A stretch of DNA of 63,399 bases, the filler included, from Pelomyxa schiedti (lineage: Eukaryota > Protista > Evosea), in NCBI GenBank assembly GCA_020536535.1. It is 15 parts of 15 records of this genome, joined end to end, with 100 filler letters (N's around TTAATTAATTAA, not from the genome) between each part and the next. Parts side by side here need not be neighbours in the genome. Positions count along the whole stretch, not along the records: positions 26,202 to 31,506 come from JAHLWZ010001508.1; 14 more parts are not named here. One strand, given 5' to 3'. Below are positions 1 through 31,506 of this stretch, in pieces. Below the pieces are notes generated by a model, which was not told the origin of the DNA, ran no database searches, and worked only from the letters and a program-made list of their open reading frames with translations. The stretch's first letter is position 1. The number at the start of each line of letters is the position of its first letter. Made by a program: the position numbers and the translations under genes.

Positions 1-1012
1 GGGGGGGGGGGTATACCTGGTCAGCGTTGGTGATAACGAGAACTTCGCCGTTGTCAGTGGTGACGAATCGGTTTCCAATGACGGCCAAGCAAACAACAAG
101 ATTTGGTCCTTCTCCACTGGCATAAGCAAAGGCAGTGCCTGGTTTCCGGGCCAGATATATGCCGAGTCCTAGGAAGAAAGGAAGTAAGTGGAAGAACTCT
201 GGAGTGGGAAACCCAACCTAAGGCGGAACCGTGTACAACTCTGATGCCGCGTCCCCTTTCTTTACCGGGGACAACAAGGCCTATCTTTGCGATGCTTGGT
301 ATGTTTTTAGATGCAGTCCCGTGATAGCAAGTGACAATCCTGCTGTTCTGAGCAACCCTTGTAAAGAGTCCAAGAAGATCTTTGCAAAAAAGCGGCTCCA
401 TACTGACACACACAAGACCTTGGACATACATCTTTTTATCAGAGATAGTGATGATAAAAACCTGAGTCTGAAAAGGCCCTCTCTATGTCGTAAGACATAT
501 CCCTGCCAGAGAAGACATTCAAAACAGCTCCAACAGATGGCTTGTATTTGTTGTACAGCTAATTAACCACAACCGTTGACACAGTGAGGAATGACAAAGT
601 GCAAGAATAGACAAAGCATACTGGTACTTCGTCCACATACGACGTTTCTAAGTGATTTAATTTCCTAGCAAGTTGTTCATCAGCGGCAATTTGCTTATCC
701 CGAAGTATGCGAGAACTGTCCGGGGTGTCCTCTACCAATAGTTTAGCGATTGCTGCATCATTTTTTGTCTCTTCTGCAATTTTCTTTTCTCTCTGGCGCC
801 TTTCTTCCTCCTGTTGATCCCTGGATACAGGTAAGATGAGAGGGAAAACAGGAGGGATGTCACATTTCAGCCAATCCTCGTGCCAGCTGTTCGTCTTCCA
901 AAAATTGCTTTGTGAGAAGATCTTCAGGAATGGATCTGCAACACAAAAATTCTCAGTAAAGGTGTGCAGGAAGAGGGAAGAATATTGACTTGTCTGCTGA
1001 GCGGATTTTATC
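1..1012 (-). CDS. PARP-like ADP-ribosyltransferase catalytic domain protein (multi-exon; 3' end runs off window, 5' end uncertain)
   Basis: Spliced reading gives TCYHGTASKNIPSIAKIGL...HGSALG|GIYLARKPGTAFAYA...NGEVLVITNADQVYP, which fits the H-Y-E ART signature. An upstream exon has a charged helical region (ADEQLARKL). Confidence 0.7.
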
Positions 1013-1625: not shown

Positions 1626-2936
1626 TCAAAGTTTGGTAAGGAGGTTTGTGGGTTCCTCACCCCACAAGACAGAGAGGTACTGGGTGACATCAAGTCCAGC
1701 TGAGGCGTGGGTTGCATTATCGAAACGATAGAGGTTGCTACCGGGAATATGGTTGTGGTATTCGTAGGCAGCCTTGGGTGTTATAAGTACATCTATTATG
1801 AAGTTAAGGCTTGAACAACGCAAAGTTGAAGCATACCATACTCTGCAAATACAATGTCTACTCTTCTATTGGCAACATTGCTCCAATTTATTTCCACGGG
1901 GTGCAACCAGGTAGTTCCGATGCTACTGTAGCCTCTGTCACTGTGTTGGGTCACACATTGCACCATTTCTTCGCAGATTGCATCAACTCCCCCAGGCATG
2001 AGAGAAGCCAAGTGAATAACTTCTTCAGGGGTGCCGGACATTGTAAAGAAACTAGTACAATTGTTTTGGAGCATGGGTACAATCATATAGTGGACCAGAA
2101 CCTGGTCAGAATTTTAACTTTTTATTCAGATTTGCATGAAGTAGTACCTCCGTTATTCTGGTATGAGCACACAGCCAAAGGAAGAATTTCCCACCGAGAC
2201 CATAGTCATACCATGTTGGATCTGGAGGTGCACCTACCACAAGTAAGAGCTGGCCCACTAAATCTGGTGCTGTGCTTGCCATAACAGCGGCTGGAAGTCC
2301 TCCACCTGACCACCCGGCGACGCCAGCAAATCTGTTGGCCAGTAAGTAAACGAAATTGGAAAAGATGTAATACTTGGTGATTCCCAGATGGCTTGCCAGT
2401 TGTTCGATATCTTTGTAGTATGTAGTCCAAGGGTCTGCAGTCTCCTTCCATGTACTATAGCCATATCCAGGAAGTGTAGGACATATGGCACGGAGGTTGT
2501 GTTCAGAAAACAGCCTAGCAAGAGAATTTTTACAACAAATCACAATGAAGCAGTAAACGATGTACTTGTCCGCGAGAAGGCACACAGTTTTTCCAGTCTG
2601 TAGAGTGCCCTGGAACAACAAAACGGGTGTTCCCTGTGGGTCTCCTGCCATGTGGTACTCCAAGTACCTTCCGTCATCCAATTTTACTACACAGTATTTA
2701 GTGCCACTCAAACTAGCAAAATTGTACAACATGTGTTATTTAAAAAGCGCGAAGTGCACGACCCATACGATACACCACTCACTGAAATTGATGCCGGCCA
2801 GTTTAAGCATTTCCGGGGGTGGTTGGGGCCTCTCCTGCATCGCATGCATAACCAATAAAGGATACGCTATAGCCAATCCCAAGGCCACAAGTGCCCCCGT
2901 AATAGCGACACAACGACAGCAACACCGGCAAGCCAT
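1626..2936 (-). CDS. alpha/beta fold hydrolase with N-terminal membrane anchor (multi-exon)
   Basis: VKLDDGRYLEY..GDPQGTPVLLFQG, PTLPGYGYS, nucleophile elbow GWSGGG, C-terminal His (FDNATHA) and a hydrophobic N-terminus. Confidence 0.85.
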
Positions 2937-3324
2937 CTGGGCCCCTCCAAGTCAGAATAATAGGATAATGTAACTGTCAATGATTTTCACAGTCTCTTTT
3001 ATGTAAAAAGGGAGATGCGGATCTCGATCCTTCGCCAAAGTTCGACAGAATTGCTAGATTGCCAGGAAGCTTTCGTCTAGAGGCGCAAGGACATTAATGT
3101 GGTTCCAAAAAACAGTTGATGTGATGTGTTGTAATTGTCGAGTTTTGTGTGTTTTTTTCTTTTTTCTTCTCTCACCTTGCCACGAGGACATGGTGCCTTC
3201 GCTCATGTGGAATTCACAGAGCGATGGAACCGACAAAATGGGTGGTGAGATAATAGTACACAGTGAAGTGTGGTGGGTGTGGTTATTGTGAGTGAGGTTG
3301 GGGAGTGTGATATGGGTTGTGGGC

Positions 3325-4497
3325 TCAGAGGGCCACGGGGCAGCTTGACAGTGCGCGGATCATCAGCTGGATTGCTGTCATGGCCTCTAGTATTTGCTGC
3401 TGCTTAACTGCAGTTGCCGGTTGTTTGACACCTGAGAGAGAAGTTGGTAAAAAGGCGTGATTGCGGTACGGAAAGCAAGATAGTACCTTGCGCCGAGGTA
3501 TTGCGAGGAGCCAATGATGACGGGCCAACGTTGGTACTCGTAGAAGAAACCACCGGCATATGTGAACTGGTTGGTACTCGAGTGGCTGGAGCGGCATTGC
3601 GTGCGGGGGCAATGTCTGGGTGGATTTGACCATTACTAGTTAACGCAGATGTGGCCAGCATGAACAGAAGATCCGCCGGATTCGCGGCTGTTGTCATTGG
3701 CTTGCTACCAGAATTCGTAAGGTTCTGAGAGATAGGCAATGGGCCAGTCGGCGAGTTCGTGGCACTCAGTGACTTGGGTGTTAGGCTCCGCGTAGGCGGG
3801 GAGCTAGATTTATGCACTGGGCTAGTAGAAGAAGAAGGGCTTGTATGTGCTGCACCCCGCCTTGATGACCTCTTCCTCTGGGGAGTATTCGTACTGAATG
3901 TTTGATCTACGAAGCAAAGTTCATGTATTGCCTCCTGGCGGCGGAGATGTTCCTTGACATGATCTCCTCTTTGCTCGTGCTGCAGACGAACGGTGAGAAT
4001 TGGGAAGATGGGGGGTGAACTTCAGATACCCCAAATACATGCCGGCTGAAGTTGTTCGACATCCTCTGGGTACACTTCTCAAAAAAGCAAACGTAGTTGC
4101 CGTCGTCGTCCTTAGAGAACAAAGTAGCGCCATATCTCATCATTTGGGCGTGCAAGTCTGCGCCGGCGTAAGCCTGGCTAGTAGCCAACGAAGGTTGCTC
4201 CTGTATATTATGATCCTGAATGACATCCGGAGGCGGCGAGCGTTTCCTGTGCGAGTTGCCTCCGTGGAACTGAATCGGGGAGTTTGCTCGCGAGGAGTCG
4301 CTGCTGCTGTCCATTGGAGTAGAAGACATCCCAACCAAGGCGGTAAGGGCATTAGCTATAGCGAGGCGATCGATCGACTCGACGGTGGACTTGTCGGTTA
4401 GGGCCGGGCAGAAAGATACCGGAGACCTCTCATTGCACTCAGTCTCAACCTTGCGGCTTCTTTTGGAACATGGAGTTTGAGCCTTGTCCTGATCCAT
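3325..4497 (-). CDS. Ser/Pro-rich protein with a C2H2-like zinc finger (putative transcription factor); 3' end uncertain
   Basis: YVCFFEKCTQRMSNNFSRH..|QHEQRGDH across an intron, flanked by low-complexity regions. Confidence 0.5.
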
Positions 4498-5163
4498 GCG
4501 TTAACGTAGGGAATCGTAGAAAAAGGGAGGAAAAAAAAAATAGTTGGTTCATGGTGTACCATCTTGTCGTCAAAACAAAGGAAAGAAACAGAGAGCCTTT
4601 GGTCCTTGGCTGCCGTACTGCCTTGCATGTTTGTGTGCTGTTGTTTTTTTAAAAAATGTGCCCCAATCAATCAGGAAAAAAAACGTCCCGCTGGAAATGT
4701 GCCGTCATCACTTTGTCCGAAGTGCAAAAAGCTCGGTTTTTGTATGATTGTTCGAAATCACTTCCAGGAAAAAATTTGAAGAACGGCGCCGCTTCTTTGT
4801 TGCAGACTGGACCACACAGGCAGGTTCCCCACCGAAAACAGGTACCGGAATTTTTCGGCGATTGTCAGTCCGCAGATCGACTATGAAGCTCCAGAATAGC
4901 AGTGATTCGGTGTACCAAACCATCAAATCGATCTCCCGTCCTGGGGATCTGAGCCATTCTCTCACTTTACAAACTTAGTGCAAGAGCTCAGGATACACAA
5001 ACATTCTTAAGAAAGACCAGCAGCAGTTTGTTTGGGATGAGAAAGTATCGCAGCCTCTTTCCTGAGAGTGTTCACAGCGTGGAAACGGGAATCTGTTGGG
5101 GTGATTTGCTTCGAAGTCGAGCAACAACTGTTCCTCCAAATAAAACCAATAAAGATCTATCGA

Positions 5164-7552
5164 ATGACAGACACAAGCGCGACAACCGCGACTGCGACAG
5201 CTACAGCGACCACGACAGCGGCGGCGTCAACTTCAACTACCGTTGTTTCGACACCCAGCTTGTCGGTGGACGAAAAAGTTGCGCTTATCACCAGGTTCGG
5301 AATGGCAGATCGCCGTTTTCATCCCTCGTACTCTAACTTTTGTTGTTGGATTTTTGCGTTTGTAGAAACTTGCAGGAAGTTATTGGAACTGAGCAAGTAA
5401 GGGCAATTGTTCAAGAAGGACGCCCGTTGAAAATATACTGGGGTACAGCGCCCACTGGAAAGCCCCACATCGGTACCTCAAATAAACCAACTGTTACTTC
5501 TTTGAAAGTGTAACTCCCAACAGGATACTTCGTGCCTACCACTAAAATTGCGGATTTCCTCAAGGCTGGTTGTGAAGTTACTATTCTTTTTGCAGACTTG
5601 CACGCGTTTTTGGACAACTTAAAGACATCTTGGGACCTTCTTACATTTCGCACTCAGTACTATGAGGTATGAAGACTGAGTCAGGAACTACCGATGACAT
5701 TTTTGCCAGATTGTGATTAAGGGGCTTCTTGAAAGTGTCGGTGCCCCCATTGAGAGATTGAAATTTGTGCGCGGAACTGACTTCCAACTCTCCAGGGACT
5801 ACACTCTGGACATGTATAAGTTGGCATCCAAGAGCACCTTACACGATGCAAAAAAAGCTGGAGCCGAAGTTGTGAAGCAGGTAATTCCTTCAAACCAAGT
5901 CCATCATGACTTACAGAATTAAAGGTGGATAACCCTCTTATGAGTGGTCTGATGTACCCCCTCCTTCAAGCTCTGGATGAACAATACCTTGGTGTTGACG
6001 CACAGTTTGGTGGTGTTGACCAGCGCAAAATTTTCATGTTTGCTGAAGAGAACCTGCCAGTTATCGGGTACAAAAAACGCATTCACTTAATGAATGCCAT
6101 GGTTCCTGGTTTCTCTGCGTAAGTGCCTTTCAAGTCTTCACTTTCCCATTTTTGATTGTGGATTTCCAGTGCTCGTCCTGTTGTTACCTCCACCCCAGCA
6201 CCGGAAAGTACTGCAGCTACCACAACAACCCCAGCTGCCACTGCACCCACTTCCACAACGCCAGCGACACCCTCAACGGCTTCAGCGGCTTCAACCTCTG
6301 CAGCAAGTGCTCTAACGTACGAAAAGATGAGTGCCTCTACTACAGATTCGAAGATAGACCTTCTTGATGACCCTGCAACAGTCATGAAGAAAGTCAGTAA
6401 GGCTTTTTGTGAGCCTGGGAACATTCGAGAGGTTGGCTCGGCCCTCATTCGTCAAACAAGTAACTATGATAGAATGCTCTCCTTGTATTCTGCAGATTGG
6501 TTCTATTCCCGCTGCTTGATGGGAAACCACTTGTTATCCCCCGAGCTGACAAGTATGGTGGTCCAATAAGTCTTACAGACTATGCTGAACTTGAAACTGC
6601 GTTTGGAGCACAGAAATTATTCCCTCCCGACCTAAAGCTTGGTATAGTAAAGTACCTGAAAAGCCCCTTTAATTTGTCACAGGGGTCCATACCTACATCA
6701 ACCACTTCTTGGCACCTATACGTGCCAAGTTCACCACACCCGAACTTCAGCAACTAGTTGCCAAAGCCTATCCTAACGGTACAACATAATCTTCCTTGTA
6801 CGGGGTACTAACCAGTACTAGATCCAGTCCCAGTGTTGACATCGACCCCTGAAACACATGGAGCAGCTGTTGCAAAGCCGAAGGCAACACCAAAAGGAAA
6901 ACCTGCTGCTAAGGTAGCCCACAGACCCCAAATGCAACCAACTTTTCTGACGAAACTAGCCTGCAGAAAAACCCATGGATATATCTCGGGCCAATCTGTT
7001 AGTTGGTCTGATTGAGAAGTGTGAAAAACATCCTGGTGCTGACTCCCTTTTTGTTGAGACAGTGGACTTTGGCCGTATATTTCATTTTTTTAATGTGCTT
7101 CGACTTATTTTCATCTAGCACACGGAAAAGCAACCGTTGTCAGTGGTCTTGCGAATTTCATGAAACCAGAGGACCTTACAGGGAAGCGTGCCGTTTTCCT
7201 CAAGAACCTTAAGCCCAGTAAGCTCCGGGGGGTAATGTCTGAAGCTATGATTCTAGCTGCCTCCAATCCGTACTTCCTTACATACTTTCAAGCAATGAAT
7301 GAATCTAACTGCAATTGCAGGGAACACACGCAAGTGGAGGTAGTCTTCCCACCTGCTGACACACCCATTGGCGAGCGAGTCACAGTTGCAGGCTTCCCTG
7401 GGGAACCCGACGATGTACTCAAGGTGTGGGACAAAATCCAGCCGGATTTGTCCACATCAACCACCCTTTCTGCTACCTACAAGGGCGTTCCACTTGCAAC
7501 CTCAAGGGGTGAATGCAAAGTCAGGTCTCTTGTTGGTGCTAATGTCAAGTGA
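5164..7552 (+). CDS. YARS: cytosolic tyrosyl-tRNA synthetase with C-terminal EMAPII/Trbp111-like OB tRNA-binding domain (many introns)
   Basis: [15 protein letters not shown]|Y (HIGH), [44 protein letters not shown], then C-terminal [25 protein letters not shown]. Confidence 0.95.
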
Positions 7553-7637
7553 GCAAAACCAAAAGTAATCCAGCAATAGAACCCAAAAAAGCTTCGTCTT
7601 TTTTCCCCATAGCTTTTTGTCCATTCCTTTTCAATTT

Positions 7638-10600
7638 TCAATTGTGATTGTGGCTGTCTTTGTTGGTGACTTGGGGTGGGTTTTGTATGAGGCGCTTGCG
7701 TAGCTCCAGCACGGTTTCCAGTGTTTGTTTGATTTGTTCCTGAGGCTCCTGGAGTGTTGCTCGTATGGTTTCTGTCTCGGCATGTGAAAGTGGAGCAGTG
7801 CACTCGAGCGGAATAAGCTGTTCTCGCTCCGCAATGACCTGTGAGTATTGTTGATTTGAGTGTTGGTATTATTGATAGGAATTTGTTCCCTACTTTATCT
7901 GCTTGTTCTCTCAAATCATCCAGCCTGGTTTCCATGGCCCTCAGCTGCTCCAAGTATTTGATGACGGATGGCTCAGTGAAAGGTGGTGTGAGGACTAGAT
8001 TGAGAAGCTTGATGAGTCTGGCTCGTTGCTCAACTTGGGTTTTCCGAACCTGAGAATTTGTCATGGAATGTTTGTGTGAATTTGAACTTTTACCTTATTT
8101 CTAAGAACTTCGAGTTGTCTGTAGGTCTGTTGTGCTTCGCGGAGTTGTTGCTGGATTTCTTTTACACGTTCCTCCTGTTGCATCATAGTCTGTTTCAGAG
8201 AGGCACGTTTTTCTTGTATGTGTGGAATTACATCCTAAAGAGGGACTTACTATAAATGCGTGACTATTCATGCGGAACCAGTACAATACACACATTTAAG
8301 TAATCAATGGTAGGTTTTAACTGCTCCGAAGCCGTTTGAATGAACAGATCAGCTTCCCGTTTTGGCATTGTCTTTTGTGATCTTGGGAAGCAGTACTGTG
8401 GAGGTGGGGGAAGAATTGATATGGGTTCACAACGGTCTGGGGTGATGGAAGCCAGTGCAGATGTTGCCTAATAGGAACGTTAGAATGTAGATGGGTGCTG
8501 TGGGGAGATTGAAGATTCCAACCTGGTTAACAGAAAGGTCCACCACTTTTATTTCCCCGTCGAAGGTGAGGGCAATTGCACAGGTACCAACAAGCTTGGT
8601 GTTAACGACTGCAAGGCCAATCAGAGGAGAGAGCACACAACTGAAAGGGGAAATGTGAAGAGAGGCTCTTTGATAATACTACATACGATTTATCTCCAAG
8701 TGGAGTAGTGCATATCAACTTGTGAACTAACTGTTCGGATGGCAAAGCCTCATCTGATTGGGTGAATACATCTAAATGTGCGACATGAAGTCCAGAGCTG
8801 TGTTGACGGTTAGATTTTATAAGAAATGTTAAGCGCGAAAAAAAAAACAAACGAACCTGTGGTGGAAAAACACCTTGTTGGGTAAGTCAGAGAAAGTATT
8901 CATGTGCCTGCATATAAATTAGACAAAAGCAGACAACCAGGTATGAAGTGTTTCACATGGCTGAATGGAAGCTATCTAGCCTCGAACAAAACTGTGGGAA
9001 TTGTAAATCTATTTCTAGAACCTGCCTGCAGGTGACATGTCCTTCAGATATCAGTTATTATATAGTCAGTGGTATTATTTGGCATACTATCCACTAGAGG
9101 TGACACTTCTTGAAGGTTTACTGCATAGACACGCACAATGCCAGCCTTGCTGCCACAAACAAGATATGCACCAAACGACTGCTCCAAGAATAAAAGACTG
9201 CAAGTGCCCTCAAGCTTTCCAAACCTTTCTGTAAATGGCGTTAGGTTGGCCAGCAACTGCGAGTTGGGAAAAACCAAGATGATTTTGACGAGCTTTCCCA
9301 TACCAGTTTAGTGTATAGTTAGGGCTGCAAGAATGCTCCTACAATCAAATTAGAAATCCTTGTAATATTACAAGTGTTCACGCACCTCGACCTCGGCAAT
9401 TTCTGGGAAGTCAGCTGGAACAGAATCCTTGAGTTCTTTGAACAATTCCTGGGAGATCACCCTGGAAAATAAAGTGGGTTAAAGGAACAGGTGAAGACGA
9501 AAATAAAATCAAAAAATACTTACTGTCCAGGAACAAATACTGGGCACATAAAAGATAACTGTCCTTCTGGGCCACAAAACCACACGGAAAATTGACCCCA
9601 CAGATGGCCTCTGCCCCACGCAAATGCTTGGGGGGAACTGGAGGGCACATGCTGGTATTTGGCAGCGTGATCAAATTCTGTGTTCCACACCCTGCAAGAA
9701 AGTGATTTAAAATTGTATACAACTCTGCTTTGTGGAATATTTTTTTTCCTCCTTTCTATCACCTCAAATTTTCAGTGGGTACTCACATGAAAAAGCCCTC
9801 TTGAGTCAGCACTCCCAGTATCGCTTCACAATGTGGATGCCACTCGGCTTGTTTAATAATATATGAAGTCCTTTTATTTGGCCCGGGAGATGCTGTGTAG
9901 TTGTGTAATACTCTGGCCTGGTGATATCTGAGTACAGTATGTGGTAGGGTATTACGTACGATGTCAAGTTGACCAATCTTTGGGGGGCTGGCGAGTACAT
10001 CAACAGGGAAGAACACCTCATTTGGGATCTCAACAACAATTATGTGTGCTAGTTTAAAGGTGAGCACTTTGTGAATGCTTTTCTATATATTTTTATATCT
10101 GCTGAAAGAAAAACATTACCTTCTCCAACAATTGCAAGGTATTTCCCATTTTTGCTGAGAGAGATTTTAAGCACAACAAGGGGCATCAAACTCGGGGTAA
10201 TAGGGATACTTTTCTGCATGCAACATTATAAACAAAAAGGGGAGGATACATCAACGAAATTGAATAGAGCGAAACAAAGGAAAAAGAGGCAAGGAACCGC
10301 ACCGAGACTTCGAGATTGCTCATGCTGCTCACATAAATCGCGCAATTCTTCACAGTGTAGAGCAAATTGTTATCAGCATCAACGGCCAACAAATTCCTGG
10401 GCACCATGAGCCGCAGCGGGGTGTTCCCAGGCGCCGGCGAGGCCGAGGCCGCGGCCGCGGGGGAAAGCGACGCGGCGGACATGGCGCGGCCCGGGGACGA
10501 CGGGACCCGCATGCTGCCCACGACCGCGTGCGGGGGCATGGGGGCGAAGGCGCGGGGGTCCCTGAAGGCCACGTTGGCGCTGAGCTGCCGGCACACCCGC

Positions 10601-26201: not shown

Positions 26202-29200
26202 TGAGGAAGTGTGCAAGTTGGTTTGCTTGTTTGTTGAGTTCATCATAACTCACTGTTTCATTCCCAAACATCAAGGCTGGGAGATTTCCATGCTTTGTGA
26301 CGGACTCCTCGAACAGGAAGTGGACTGCTTTTCTCGTTTCTTCTGTGGTTGTGGTGTTGAACACCTTCTCTGTGGAATTCCACACTGTCAGGCTCTTGGT
26401 CTCCGACTCATGAATGCAATTCAACTGAGAGATGGGCTTGTCAGGGCAGGACACAACACTCTTCATGAGAGTCTCCATGTTGTTTGCGAATCTGACGACT
26501 GTTGAGTCATCAAGGATATCCTTGGCGAACTCGAACTGGAGCTCAAGGGAACCGTCGCTCTGTGGAACAGCATTGAGGGTGAGATCAAACTTGGACATGA
26601 CGGGGTGGATGTTGTAAAGAAGCTTCACGTCTCTGATTCCTTCCATGGTGAAGTTCTTATTGTTCACGAACTTCCAGTCGTCCATCACGAAGCTGACTTG
26701 AACTAGTGTGTGCATGCTCATCCTTGTTTCGATTCCAGCAGTGTCAACAATCCAGTCCAATGGGATGTCCTGTGCCTCCTGCACAGAAAGCACCTTTCTT
26801 TTCACGGACTCCAGTGTTTCTTTGAAACTTCCTGCATCTTCGACAATAGTCCTGATGGGGAGTGTGTTCACGAAGAACCCAATCAGAGATTCCACACCAG
26901 GGTAATGCCTGTTCGCTGTTGGAATCCCGACCACGATGTCGCCTTGTGGATTTGACGGTGTTCCGGGTGTTGTTTCTTTGTCTGGTTTGGCCCACCGTGG
27001 GCTGTGGAGGTGCAAAAGGATGTTGAACACAGTGAGAACTGTCATGAAAGGTGTGGCTGTGCTGATGCTCTTTCCGAGTGTTGTCAACGCCGAAAACAGT
27101 GACGGTGGGATCATGTGGATGTGGAATCCGGCGGAATAAGTCCGGTTGTCAGTCCTTGGCCTGTCGAGTGGCAGTTCGCAAACGGAGTTCACTCCCTCAA
27201 GTTCCTTCTTCCAGAACGAGAGTTGCTTCTCTTTCAGTTCGCTTGAGGTGCCCAGGAGTTCCCTTTGCCAAACCGCAAAGTCGGCGTACTGGAACGGGAG
27301 TGGATTGGAAAAGGAAGATTTGGTTGGGTCTATGGGGGTCGGTGTGGCAGTGCTGCTGGCGGGACGGTTGTTGAGAATCTCTTGGTTGTACCGATAGGAG
27401 AGCTCTCTTACAAATACAACCATTGACCACCCGTCGGTGATAATGTGATGCGCATTAAAGAAAAGAACTGCCTCTTCAGCACCAAGCCGGAACAGAGTGA
27501 GCCGCATGAGGGGCCCTGTTTTCAAATCAAAGGGAGTGCTCACTTCCTTGCGGTACTCCTTAGCAAGCCAGTCCTCAGGCGATGATCCGGTAGCTGGGGG
27601 ACAGAAGTTCACCTCTCTGATCCCAATCACGGTCGTGGCATCCTCTGGAGGGAGTATAACCTGAACTCCTTGCCCTGATCCTGAACTCTCCTCCGCGGCG
27701 AACCTTGTGCGGAGGATCTCGTGGTGAACGGCCATAGCATGAGTGGCCTTCCACAGTGCACTGCTGTCAAGATGTCCAAACAAATGGGCACCTCCGAAGA
27801 CAGAGTATTGAACCGAGTTCGGCTGGAGCTGATCCAAGAAGAACAGCCTGTGTTGCGTCAGTGACAGTGGTGCAACCTTCCTTTTGTTAGATGGTGATGC
27901 TGGTAAGGGCTTGATTGGCGGGAACTTGAACTTGGTTGCTGAGTTGCTTTCAGCAAGGAGAGCCGCCATCGACCTTATGGTTCTGGCTGAAAACAAATCG
28001 CTGAGGTTGAGGCTCAACCCCCGTTTGTCAGCGGAAGCAATTGCCTTGAGCATTCCAATTGAGTCTCCACCAGCTTCGAAGAAGTCCTCATCGATCGATG
28101 ATGGTTGTGCTGGGAGCACCTCACACCAAATCTCAAGAACCTTTCTCTCCATTGGTGTCAGAGTCTCTGTGTCAATTTTCGGCCTCGAAGGTTCTTTTGA
28201 TGACGATGGAGAGGGAGGCACTTTGGGGGTATCATGAGCAGTGACACAGTTAATAAGGGTGGACTTCTTCTTTAACACAGAGGCGCATAAGGCGTGAGTT
28301 AAAAAACCAACACCTGGTGGTCCGAAATCAAATATCTCAACTGAATCGCATCCTCCGTTGTGTGAGACAATGGCTCTGTACAAATGTTGGAAGCGAAATA
28401 AAAATGGTGGACAGCCACTTGACAGTTTCCGGCCAATCGATAGGGAGTCCCATTCCGTCTGTGTGAACAGTTTCACAGTAGCGAAGCGCCTCCAACTTCA
28501 CAAAATAGATTAATTGCCAATCGATCAAGAGGGAAGGAAAGCGTGAACAACCTGGGATATGTCTGCATTTAAGCTCGTGCTGAAAAATGCGGCACTGTTT
28601 GGAACAGGATTCCAGAGGGAATACTTTGTGGGTGGGACGCGGCGAAGGAATTGATTCATGATTTCAATTAGATAGAACGGTGCATGGAAGCCCTCCGTCA
28701 CTTGCAGAACTTTGACTTGACGTGGAGGAAAAAGACTCTGAAGTTGGGCCAGAGGAGTCGGGTGACCTGGGTATAACGAATCAGAGATAAAAGCGACAAC
28801 AACAGAGGCAGAGGGAATACGGAACAAAGAAGTGGTACAAACCAGAGACAACTGACTGGGTGGGTGTCAACCTGATGCTCAAAAAAAGTGGTGTTGAGGG
28901 GAACTCAGAATTCACAGCTGCAATGTGCTTCTCAAGCGTGGCAACTGGAACCTTGAACATGCACATCCAATACTCGGACATCACTTCTTTCCCCCACTGT
29001 TTGATGTGTATCTCAAGGGTTGAAAGCATCATATGAAATCCTCTTTTGCAACCGCTCAAGCACATGGCTTGGAATTGGGCCACCGAATCTGCAGAATGCA
29101 TTTTAGAGAAAACGGTAGCATTCCCCACGTCGGAAAAGGGATTATGTGGAACCTGCTTTGAGGATGGCAGATACCGGTATTTGTCCGGCAGAATAACCCA

Positions 29201-29882
29201 CACAGACATCAAATGACCTCGCAAAAGCCAAGAATCTCTTGTTCCCATCAGGGTCATCCTCATCAGAGCCTCGTTCAAGAGCAGCAGCAAGAAAACAAGC
29301 ACACGAATATATAGTTTGCAGTGGGATGCAAATCAAAGGTATCGCAAGAAGCTTGTTTGATGGTCGGCTCTCTCGGTCATGAACCCTTTTTTAAAGTTAT
29401 TCTTATTAATATTAATAATAAAAGGCTTATATAAATATTTATTTAAATATCGTTCATATGAACAGGAATTGTGTTGGTCACCACAAAAAAACCGAAACGA
29501 AAAAAAAACAAACAAATACAACCAAAATCTCTCCCATCCCACAATTTCAACTGTCAGTTGCGTCGGATACGACATTTGTTACATACCACGAGTGAGGGTC
29601 ATATTTCCTCGCGAAGGAGCCGTCGCCGTTTGGCCTGAAGAACGCGTCGGCGTCGGCACCCACCGCGTCGCACAGCCGCTTCATCGTTATGGGTTTGTTC
29701 ACCGTGCGGGTCAGCACCTCCAACGTCCGGCGGATCCACGGTCCCACAATCCCCGGCGAGGCCGCCGACCACTCGGCCAGTTTGTCGAGCAGCCACTTGG
29801 CGGTGTCGGGGTCGTCGTTGAATCCCGAGCACAACGCGATCCTACGAAGTCGAGGTGTTGTCGGTGGTACTACGGCCGACAT
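26202..29882 (-). CDS. non-ribosomal peptide synthetase, AT(SAT/FabD-like)-T-C-A..., truncated at contig end
   Basis: PCP motif FFEAGGDSIG. C domain PLSLTQHRLFFL, HHIITDGWS, LPLDRPR, IGFFVNTLPIR, SKFDLTL. A-domain start SYDELNKQANQLAHFL. Upstream AT motifs VGYSAG, TPTQSVVSG, LQVTEGFHAPF, IFDFGP. Confidence 0.9.
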
Positions 29883-30571
29883 TGTGTGGTGTTGCTGTGT
29901 TGGTTCAGAACAAAATCGTGTTTATTTGGCTTTTCGCGTTTCAACGAGGAAGCACCGGCTCCGTGAACCGGCGAAGAAGCAGAGTTTCGACTTTGTTAAA
30001 AAGGAAGATCTCTCAGCGAATCGCATGCGCGGTGAGAGAAAAGTGAAAAGAACAGATAGACGCGGGACAAAATCGAGCATCGTTACTTTTTTGTACGGTG
30101 GATGTTTCGAGCTACTGAATTGCTTAACGGCCCAATCACCCGCGATTTTTAATTACGCATCGGCTTATGATTCAAACGAAGGTGTGGAGAGCAACTCCGC
30201 CTTCAGTGCCTTTGGAGGCACGGTGGTCGCCACACCTACCACCGTAGCAGAAGAACCAGTCCACTCTCAGAGGAGACACCAACTTGGTTTCCAGCTACTT
30301 TGACACACAGAAGGGAAGACAACGGAAACACAAAAACACAAAAATGCCACGAGCAAACACGATCAACGCACCTGCCAGCTCTCAGCAGGTATGCGCCACA
30401 GGCTCCTCCACACCAACACCAACTCATTCTGCCCGCAACAATCGCCGTTCATAGATAGATGACTTCCTGAACACCACCTTCCAACACACCACAATGTACA
30501 TAATAATACATTTTCGCGGGAAGTATTAATTGCTAGTTGCTTTTCAATACCAACAATCAGGACCCTGGCCT

Positions 30572-31506
30572 TCAGCAAGAATAAGGCCTTGAGAGTGACA
30601 CTGAACTCGTGGCACCCACAATCCCGAACGACACGATGTACATTCCCGAGAGTGCCTCGGTGCACGCAACCGTCCCATCATCGCACTTTGTGAACAGCAG
30701 GCCGTCACCACCCCACACCCGCGTCCTGCACTCCCTCCACTCCACAACCATCCTGTTGGTCCCAGTCTCGAAGATGCCACTGGCCTGTGGGTTACTCTGG
30801 TGGTTCTGCCCGGGGCCGAGGTTGGTGCAGACTCCAAAGTGGGTGTCATCCACAGGCGAGACTCCAAACGCGCGAATGACGGTGCAGGCCCCAGAACTCA
30901 CGCACTGGACAACAGTGACCGGCTCGGTTGGGTAGGAGACCCACAGAATGACAAACAGGCCCTTGTGCCGGTCACCAAACACGTGGAACACGGTGGCTTG
31001 TGCCCACGGAGCGTACCGGGCTACACTGTGCTCAGTGGTGACGAGGATTCGGCGCGATTCCCAGCACTTATGCAAGTCCAGGATCCTCAGTGTTAGACTG
31101 CTGTCACTGTAAGAAACCAGGCACAGCTCATCGCCCTCTGGGATGCACGCACTTGACCTGGTGAAGAACACTTTCGCCTGGAGGTCCTGCCTGTTGGGCC
31201 GAGTACAGGCGGGAACGACGCCCCTGAGGTCCAGGTTTTCCAAAGCAGATACCCATAAGTCCACCCACGCCCCTGCTCCTGCTGCTCCTCCTCCCTTGCC
31301 CAGCCCCAGCCTCCACACACACAAGTCTCTGTCGACTGTGCACACAACGAGCCACTTGGCGGGGCTAGCTGCCAGAGACGAAAATGGCCTGCCCAGGATC
31401 TCCACCGCCCTGAGGCTCGCCCCGGTGGTGTCCCCGAGGGCGACCCTCCCAGAGGAGTACGCGAGCACGGGCGCCGCGGGGCTCAGCAGCGCCAGCGGGA
31501 GCGGCG
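30572..31506 (-). CDS. lineage-specific intronless beta-rich hypothetical protein (5' truncated)
   Basis: Long clean ORF. C-terminal GGDGLLFT..VACTEALSGMYIVSF is shared in style with 37235-38590, 57917-58834 and 62671-63399. Confidence 0.6.

Follow-up and report, generated by a model that had tools for sequence, protein, structure and literature searches.

Nonribosomal peptide synthetases (NRPSs) are known to start their chains with an adenylation and thiolation (A-T) unit, with a starter condensation (C) domain, or with a carrier, T0, that is primed by a separate enzyme. A gene of Pelomyxa schiedti, a free-living anaerobic archamoeba with prokaryotic endosymbionts, raises the question whether this priming can also be carried out by an acyltransferase at the front of the same polypeptide. 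The gene lies on the minus strand of the piece from contig JAHLWZ010001508.1 within a stretch of 63,399 nucleotides that was joined from 15 parts of the assembly GCA_020536535.1 (the window, whose positions we use throughout). Six exons spanning the 5' 3.7 kb of the gene fall within this piece; the remainder is beyond the contig end, at the piece edge at 26202. The upstream exons encode a domain that resembles the starter unit:acyl carrier protein (ACP) transacylase (SAT) of fungal polyketide synthases (PKSs) and is followed by T0, a C domain and the beginning of an A domain. This SAT-T-C-A order occurs at seven loci of the assembly, one of which continues a highly reducing PKS (HR-PKS) in frame. 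Judging from sequence and structural models, we consider it probable that the SAT-like domain, through a dyad of Ser164 and His286, loads an acyl starter onto T0 of the T0-C-A line.

Results

Identity of the upstream domain

The original prediction, made from the DNA alone, had recognised a T domain (GGDS), an intact C domain (HHxxxDG), the start of an A domain and the acyltransferase (AT) motifs GYSAG, TPTQSVVSG, GFHAPF and DFGP, and had read the upstream exons as a FabD/SAT-like acyltransferase in what looked like an archamoeba. The organism was guessed correctly, all motifs lie where they had been placed, and Pfam located the three NRPS domains at the expected positions on the minus strand. 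Searched singly, the upstream exons gave zero matches in Pfam, NCBIfam and PDB, so the motifs alone lacked statistical support. Whole-protein searches were run with the database record P0152 or its paralogues. P0152 (1026 amino acids, aa) is the GenBank protein of JAHLWZ010001508.1 (5305 bp; gene 29882-26271) and is identical to our exon model over the first 522 residues. The exon model, with borders set by GT/AG splice sites and reading frames and corrected against the paralogue P0086, served for coordinates and for the ratio of non-synonymous to synonymous substitutions (dN/dS) only.

The prediction had named two Pfam families, PF16073 (SAT) and PF00698; the first was recovered with the spliced protein and the second was not. 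At a curated cut-off of 22.8 bits, P0152 matched PF16073 with 28.1 bits as a whole and with 31.2 bits for residues 1-330. The paralogues P0086 and P0164 reached 29-33 bits and 36-40.5 bits (E 3e-10), and in both the alignment stops at the position of the presumed catalytic His. Similarly, the nearest protein-language-model neighbours of residues 1-400 were all SAT, FAS-AT (FAS, fatty acid synthase) or malonyltransferase clusters (0.93-0.97). A PDB search with a four-paralogue profile returned acyltransferases only, namely DisD, human MCAT, PksE, PksC and a PKS AT, with marginal E values of 0.07-1.6. In these alignments TPTQSVVSG...GFHAPF pairs with NSPSQVVISG...AFHS, which brings the His of GFHAPF into register with that of DisD and MCAT, and in the MCAT alignment IDWPETVKAIV...EIFDFGP pairs with VKWEQTMHAIY...TFEVGP.

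An AlphaFold model built from four sequences had a predicted local distance difference test (pLDDT) score of 34.5. With 11 rows, including exons of the locus L005 described below, the mean pLDDT was 54.8, and the small subdomain (residues 220-280, exon C) reached 81-91. Of the best Foldseek matches to the 11-row model, 50 out of 50 contain acyltransferase folds. VIA-align gave Z 12 against residues 90-525 of fungal FAS beta (the acetyltransferase domain), Z 10.8 against PksA 3-349, Z 10.4 against CTB1 5-353 (both SAT) and Z 9.7 against E. coli FabD; the fold matches span model residues 10-397 with a root-mean-square deviation (rmsd) of about 5 A. Ser164 (GYSAG) and His286 (GFHAPF) are 122 residues apart, where about 120-135 are expected for the SAT family. 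Arg192-Gly193 is present in the window copy and is replaced by Val in P0086, in a register that is uncertain. On this profile and model evidence the domain is a much diverged member of the SAT/FAS-acetyltransferase branch of the FabD superfamily. An alternative reading of GYSAG and GFHAP as an alpha/beta-hydrolase (thioesterase) was rejected: the NxPxQxVxSG-like, WxxTV and FxxGP motifs are specific to acyltransferases, and so are all fold matches.

The carrier-condensation-adenylation core

The longest open frame runs on the minus strand from 28476 to the edge at 26202. Pfam, run on 26203-28476, found PP-binding, Condensation and the truncated start of AMP-binding (Table 1). Paralogues carry an A domain at the same place, which is complete in P0164 and P0162 and, in P0086, covers profile positions 1-330 of 384 before the model end cuts it. 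The T-C-A core is closest to bacterial synthetases (33-35% identity) and not to fungal ones. When the T-C-A frame was searched exhaustively with phmmer, about 106,000 NRPS matches resulted; two of them are close relatives, P0052 (79% identity) and P0086 (68%, 1408 aa), and come from the same P. schiedti assembly. Compared with known C domains, that of the window scored 193 bits with the elongation-type domains of Txo1/Txo2, 181 with DhbF C2, 117 with TycC6 and 66 with the surfactin starter C domain (8f7f, 8f7h). We also considered a dual E/C condensation domain, which is unlikely, as the second N-terminal HH motif is absent by eye.

One gene and not two

The exons between 28500 and 29882 had been predicted to belong to the same gene as T-C-A, and the comparison with paralogues bears this out. 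The final strand-helix motifs of the AT fold (IDWPETVK / AIVSHNGGCDSVEIFDFGPPG) straddle intron 5 and end in the T-C-A exon F, and the fold requires the first 50 residues of that exon. Five intron positions and phases, with GT-AG ends, are common to the window gene, L001 (the P0086 gene) and L005. The window shares 81-82% DNA identity with L002 and L003. In this comparison, exons A-E and the first 229 bases of exon F contain either no gaps or gaps whose lengths are divisible by three. Intron gaps measure 1, 2, 4, 5, 10, 17, 22..., and some of the gaps in the variable C-domain part are not divisible by three. The GenBank models P0152 and P0086 are likewise SAT fused to the NRPS part. According to the genome paper, transcript data were used in refining gene models, which is not proof for the window locus (PMC8887013). 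At L002 and L003, GenBank gives separate 'SAT' and 'NRPS' models, in which the intron 4 donor is read through to a stop and the frame restarts inside intron 5. Judged from these alignments, the split models are artefacts and the SAT-like domain and T-C-A are a single gene.

A seven-locus family and a PKS-SAT-NRPS fusion

The proposed search for other such proteins yielded SAT-T-C-A at seven loci of the assembly, L001-L005, the window (L006) and L007. The motif G-Y-S/C-x-G is present at all seven. Its nucleophile is Ser at six loci (GYSAG or GYSSG) and Cys at L004 (GYCGG, P0164 residue 94). The His at the catalytic position is kept at all seven as well, at a spacing of 121-122 residues from the Ser or Cys. 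The SAT paralogues are 30-47% identical, and about 60 further positions are invariant among five sequences. P0162 has a complete C-terminal end, T0-C-A-T-C-A-T, with a stop seven residues past the last carrier and without a thioesterase (TE), reductase (R) or terminal C domain. Word-indexed protein searches found no relatives of the SAT part outside Pelomyxa, nor did pattern scans of prokaryotic genomes (bacteria and archaea) and of metagenomes; the exhaustive profile search covered T-C-A only, and distant SAT-T-C proteins are possible. Among Atlas clusters, none combines SAT, PP-binding and Condensation.

At L005, SAT exon A shares an open frame (2185-9105, 2306 aa) with a previously uncalled HR-PKS. 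This frame encodes AT, dehydratase (DH), C-methyltransferase (MT), enoylreductase (ER), ketoreductase (KR) and ACP and runs into SAT exon A, and the ketosynthase (KS), with the motifs DTACSGS and HGTGT, occupies two exons just upstream. As predicted from these frames, the gene would read KS-AT-DH-MT-ER-KR-ACP-SAT-T-C-A-T-C-A-T and would be about 5400 aa long. The in-frame fusion suggests a PKS-made chain as donor also for the SAT copies that lack a PKS. A second PKS (KS-AT-ACP) adjoins the L005 gene divergently.

These results bear on the original claim of a self-contained starter without a KS. The predicted start ATG of the window gene is at 29882; similarity to L002 and L003 starts at 29846, 36 nt past it, and the Met of P0086 is likewise 12-13 residues ahead of the conserved RRIA(V/L)C(A/S)GF. 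Since, in addition, no PKS-like sequence was found in the 1.6 kb upstream, the window copy begins with the SAT-like domain and without a KS. 'Self-contained' is doubtful, because the SAT of L005 sits in frame behind a complete HR-PKS and ACP.

A major facilitator superfamily (MFS) transporter gene is found divergently upstream of the SAT-NRPS genes at L002 and L004 (L002:2367-6139, L004:6690-8788), and a class-III aminotransferase is nearby in L004 (L004:1-1167). These neighbours may indicate a cluster-like context.

Discussion

Proposed mechanism

From the conserved dyad and the domain order we infer catalysis, donor and product as follows. The SAT-like domain would take an acyl group onto its Ser as an acyl-Ser intermediate. 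The donor would most likely be a fatty or polyketide chain on the ACP of a separate HR-PKS, or else an acyl-CoA. The acyl group would then be handed to the phosphopantetheine arm of T0, and the C domain would condense acyl-S-T0 with the aminoacyl-S-T loaded by the A domain, giving an N-acylated peptide. If active, the domain would be a compact, portable lipoinitiation unit for NRPS engineering.

A wider reading is conceivable, to which we give a little less than even weight. The SAT-like domain might be a dedicated chain-transfer catalyst at the border of PKS and NRPS that moves a finished polyketide from the ACP of an HR-PKS to T0, in cis in L005 (ACP-SAT-T0-C) and in trans for the PKS-less copies. 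It might have originated in an anaerobic amoeba when a SAT of eukaryotic type, with introns, was joined to an NRPS core that resembles bacterial ones and has no introns. If true, this would be a third route of PKS-peptide coupling, beside direct hand-over from ACP to C and lipoinitiation by a ligase or starter C domain. The L005 fusion is a natural test case of polyketide hand-over to a peptide line via two carriers and a transacylase.

Several observations speak against loading by this domain. PF00698, the family of canonical PKS AT/malonyl-CoA:ACP transacylases, had no match in the exons or in P0152, and hhalign against four PKS ATs gave a probability of 27.6% (E 6.5e-4). Moreover, the GQGxQ oxyanion motif is absent, SGFNDD standing where GQGSQ is expected, and the AlphaFold model is modest in both mean pLDDT (54.8) and rmsd (about 5 A). 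Judged by its closest matches, the C domain belongs with elongation-type domains, outside the starter (lipoinitiation) subtype. In addition, the assembly was made from single cells of a mixed polyeukaryotic culture after whole-genome amplification (PMC8887013). Finally, dN/dS against L002 and L003 is 0.8-1.05 in the SAT core exons B-D; in exons C and D (28552-29088) it is about 1.0 and third-position changes are not in excess. The corresponding values of 0.08 for the T domain and 0.28 for the C domain indicate that these two are under purifying selection. A dN/dS near 1 in the SAT core may reflect changing substrate choice or functional decay with relaxed constraint. Intron 2 matches that of L002 and L003 at 98-100% identity, against 88% for the exons on either side; with dS also low over exons B-D (0.12-0.14), a recent conversion tract is suggested.

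Alternative explanations

The dN/dS values of exons B-D, the missing GQG motif and the low family scores of the window copy (28-31 bits) would all fit if the SAT-like domain were a relic or served as a non-catalytic adaptor. It would then have remained when an L005-like PKS-NRPS fusion lost its PKS, its role being at most the docking of a partner, and T0 would be primed by a separate acyl-AMP/CoA ligase, as happens in fungal echinocandin-type systems; in fungi, priming in trans is also the known way of loading T0. However, none of the seven loci has lost the Ser/Cys nucleophile or the His although the paralogues are only 30-47% identical, and a swap from Ser to Cys exactly at the nucleophile is the behaviour of active acyl-enzymes. 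Together with the roughly 60 other invariant positions, this makes a relic unlikely, although it is the strongest of the alternatives.

A domain that is active in another role appears less probable still. It might edit or hydrolyse mis-acylated T0, comparable to the acyl-hydrolases of trans-AT PKSs, or shuttle aminoacyl or peptidyl groups between carriers, comparable to VinK. An elongation-type C domain normally accepts aminoacyl or peptidyl donors, and a VinK_C cluster is among the language-model feature neighbours. On the other hand, the closest folds and families are starter or acetyl transferases, and the position between the PKS ACP and T0 in L005 fits forward chain transfer.

That the architecture is unreal, being two neighbouring genes (SAT and T-C-A), an amplification chimera or a contaminant contig, is very improbable: the split models at L002 and L003 and the amplified single-cell DNA from a polyeukaryotic culture would allow for it, but in the split models the frame passes the intron 4 donor, ends at a stop and begins anew within intron 5, the AT fold extends into the T-C-A exon, the same junction is found on seven separate contigs, close relatives occur in no sampled organism, and L001 is surrounded by eukaryotic genes on a contig of 71 kb.

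Comparison with known systems

Loading of T0 by the SAT-like domain would resemble several known ways of chain initiation. The SAT of fungal non-reducing PKSs (NR-PKSs; PksA, CTB1, CazM) and the acetyltransferase of fungal FAS beta share Pfam family PF16073 with the Pelomyxa domain, which scores above its threshold, and are matched by the fold of the modest model (Z 10-12). They also have a Cys or Ser nucleophile with a His and an N-terminal position beside a carrier-dependent condensing step. The SAT of NR-PKSs receives its chain from a different synthase, and the L005 fusion suggests the same arrangement in Pelomyxa. In contrast, the fungal SAT is followed by KS-MAT-PT-ACP and the Pelomyxa SAT by a carrier of the peptidyl carrier protein type and an NRPS C domain. 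Moreover, the Pelomyxa nucleophile is Ser at six of the seven loci (the Cys of L004 being as in fungal SAT domains), the sequences share no more than 12-16% identity, and in L005 the domain is internal, between ACP and T.

T0-C-A also opens fungal lipopeptide lines such as those of emericellamide, scopularide, W493-B, pneumocandin and pleosporacin, where an acyltransferase or a ligase primes the carrier in trans; examples are EasD/EasC, acting onto the first T of EasA, and the acyl-AMP ligases GloD and PleB (PMC3901194, PMC4515620, PMC12177691). A carrier stands ahead of the first C domain in both systems, and the fungal carrier receives an acyl chain made by a PKS or FAS. In Pelomyxa, however, the transferase is in the same polypeptide, and T-C-A is nearest to bacterial synthetases. 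The loading didomain AT(L)-ACP(L) of modular PKSs (DEBS, avermectin) consists of a canonical PF00698 AT with its carrier, followed by a KS. This AT loads a starter acyl group directly onto the adjacent carrier at the start of the line, as is proposed for Pelomyxa, whereas Pelomyxa has a SAT-type domain without a PF00698 match, followed by an NRPS C domain.

Starter C (Cs) domains of bacterial lipopeptide synthetases, surfactin among others, yield an N-acylated first amino acid (PMC7804268, PMC8949500), and the outcome proposed for Pelomyxa would be the same. Cs domains take acyl-CoA or acyl-ACP directly, without T0 or an acyltransferase, and the window C domain only distantly resembles the surfactin Cs (66 bits versus 193 for Txo1/2). 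Fungal PKS-NRPS hybrids (KS-AT-DH-MT-KR-ACP-C-A-T-R) resemble L005 in that an HR-PKS precedes NRPS modules in one gene. They differ from it in that L005 has SAT-T between ACP and C, comprises two NRPS modules and ends after T without R, TE or a terminal C domain; the window gene is without any PKS part.

In the literature on NRPS initiation modes, including a review of rule-breaking NRPSs, we found no SAT or AT loader in cis before T-C-A. Literature on Archamoebae or Mastigamoeba with PKS or NRPS gave nothing relevant among the top results, and the P. schiedti genome paper does not mention NRPS or PKS (PMC8887013). GenBank labels the window protein 'non-ribosomal peptide synthetase', and SAT is already in its precomputed Pfam list. 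All parts are known; what seems new is the order of the domains and the ACP-SAT-T-C junction of L005. With seven or more such synthetases in an expanded family, and PKSs besides, lipopeptide chemistry is likely, as far as it can be read from the genome, in an archamoeba lineage for which we know of none.

Features of the locus

Table 1. Positions of the SAT-NRPS gene parts in the window, of related loci and of neighbouring features.
Feature	Position	Strand	Remarks
Exon A	29587..29882	-	ATG and SAT-like N-terminus; RRIALCSGF 29846-29820; phase 2 end before donor GTATGT; P0152 residues 1-98
Intron 1	29386..29586	-	201 nt, AT-rich, GT..AG; gaps relative to paralogues not multiples of 3; same position in P0086 gene
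Exon B	29153..29385	-	PLQTIYSCACF; nucleophile elbow GYSAG 29198-29184, Ser164 codon 29192-29190; tblastn of P0086 E 6e-18
Intron 2	29089..29152	-	64 nt; nearly identical to L002 and L003 (see text)
Exon C	28843..29088	-	Ferredoxin-like small subdomain, ends with TPTQSVVS(G); tblastn of P0086 E 7e-20
TPTQSVVSG	28867-28765	-	Spans intron 3
Intron 3	28767..28842	-	76 nt
Exon D	28552..28766	-	GFHAPF 28692-28675; His286 codon 28686-28684, presumed catalytic His
Intron 4	28496..28551	-	56 nt; donor read through by split GenBank models at L002 and L003
Exon E	28419..28495	-	77 nt, ends ...IDWPETV(K); matches P0086 residues 383-408, a separate exon there as well
Intron 5	28376..28418	-	43 nt, GTGGCT...ACAG; position and phase as in L001 and L005
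Exon F	26202..28375	-	Open to piece edge; end of AT fold, linker, T0, C domain, A-domain start
EIFDFGPPG	28338-28312	-	
T0 (PP-binding, PF00550)	28146-27955	-	48.8 bits; GGDSI, Ser codon 28062-28060
C domain (Condensation, PF00668)	27882-26389	-	E 5e-75; profile positions 2-455 of 456; intact, HHIITDG 27450-27430 (HHIITDGWS 27450-27424)
A-domain start (AMP-binding, PF00501)	26313-26203	-	First 37 residues; profile positions 1-38, 19.3 bits, below cut-off; domain cut by edge
Upstream open reading frame	30572..31468	-	298 aa, GC-rich; outside SAT-NRPS gene
Uncalled HR-PKS, in frame into SAT exon A	L005:758-10141	+	JAHLWZ010000753.1
L001			P0086; 71-kb contig, among eukaryotic genes
L002			P0154 and P0052, split models
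L003			P0151 and separately called SAT gene
L004			P0164; SAT-T-C-A-T-C..., cut by contig end
L005			P0162; contig JAHLWZ010000753.1
L006			P0152; window gene, JAHLWZ010001508.1
L007			P0153; SAT part only, 2994-bp contig

An acceptor of exon F at 28458 was ruled out by comparison with P0086. Further downstream, P0152 departs from the open frame twice. A stretch of 48 nt at 27876-27829 is treated as an intron, which costs the C domain the 16 residues of its C1 motif (VAPLSLTQHRLFFLDQ), and the A-domain start is swapped for a 23-residue frame-shifted tail (26386-26271). As the uninterrupted frame fits Pfam better, both departures look like annotation errors near the contig end.

The 298-aa open reading frame upstream of the gene matched no recognisable family in Pfam, NCBIfam or PDB; on the opposite strand, GenBank annotates a spliced 109-aa gene at about 30025-31096 (+). 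Tandem repeats were absent from the piece. The contigs of the window and L002 stop at the same base, and their last 188 nt (window 26202-26389, L002:9421-9608) are 98.9% identical, compared with 83% in the C domain. From this comparison, the assembly seems to break off where the A-domain start is either shared between the loci or gene-converted.

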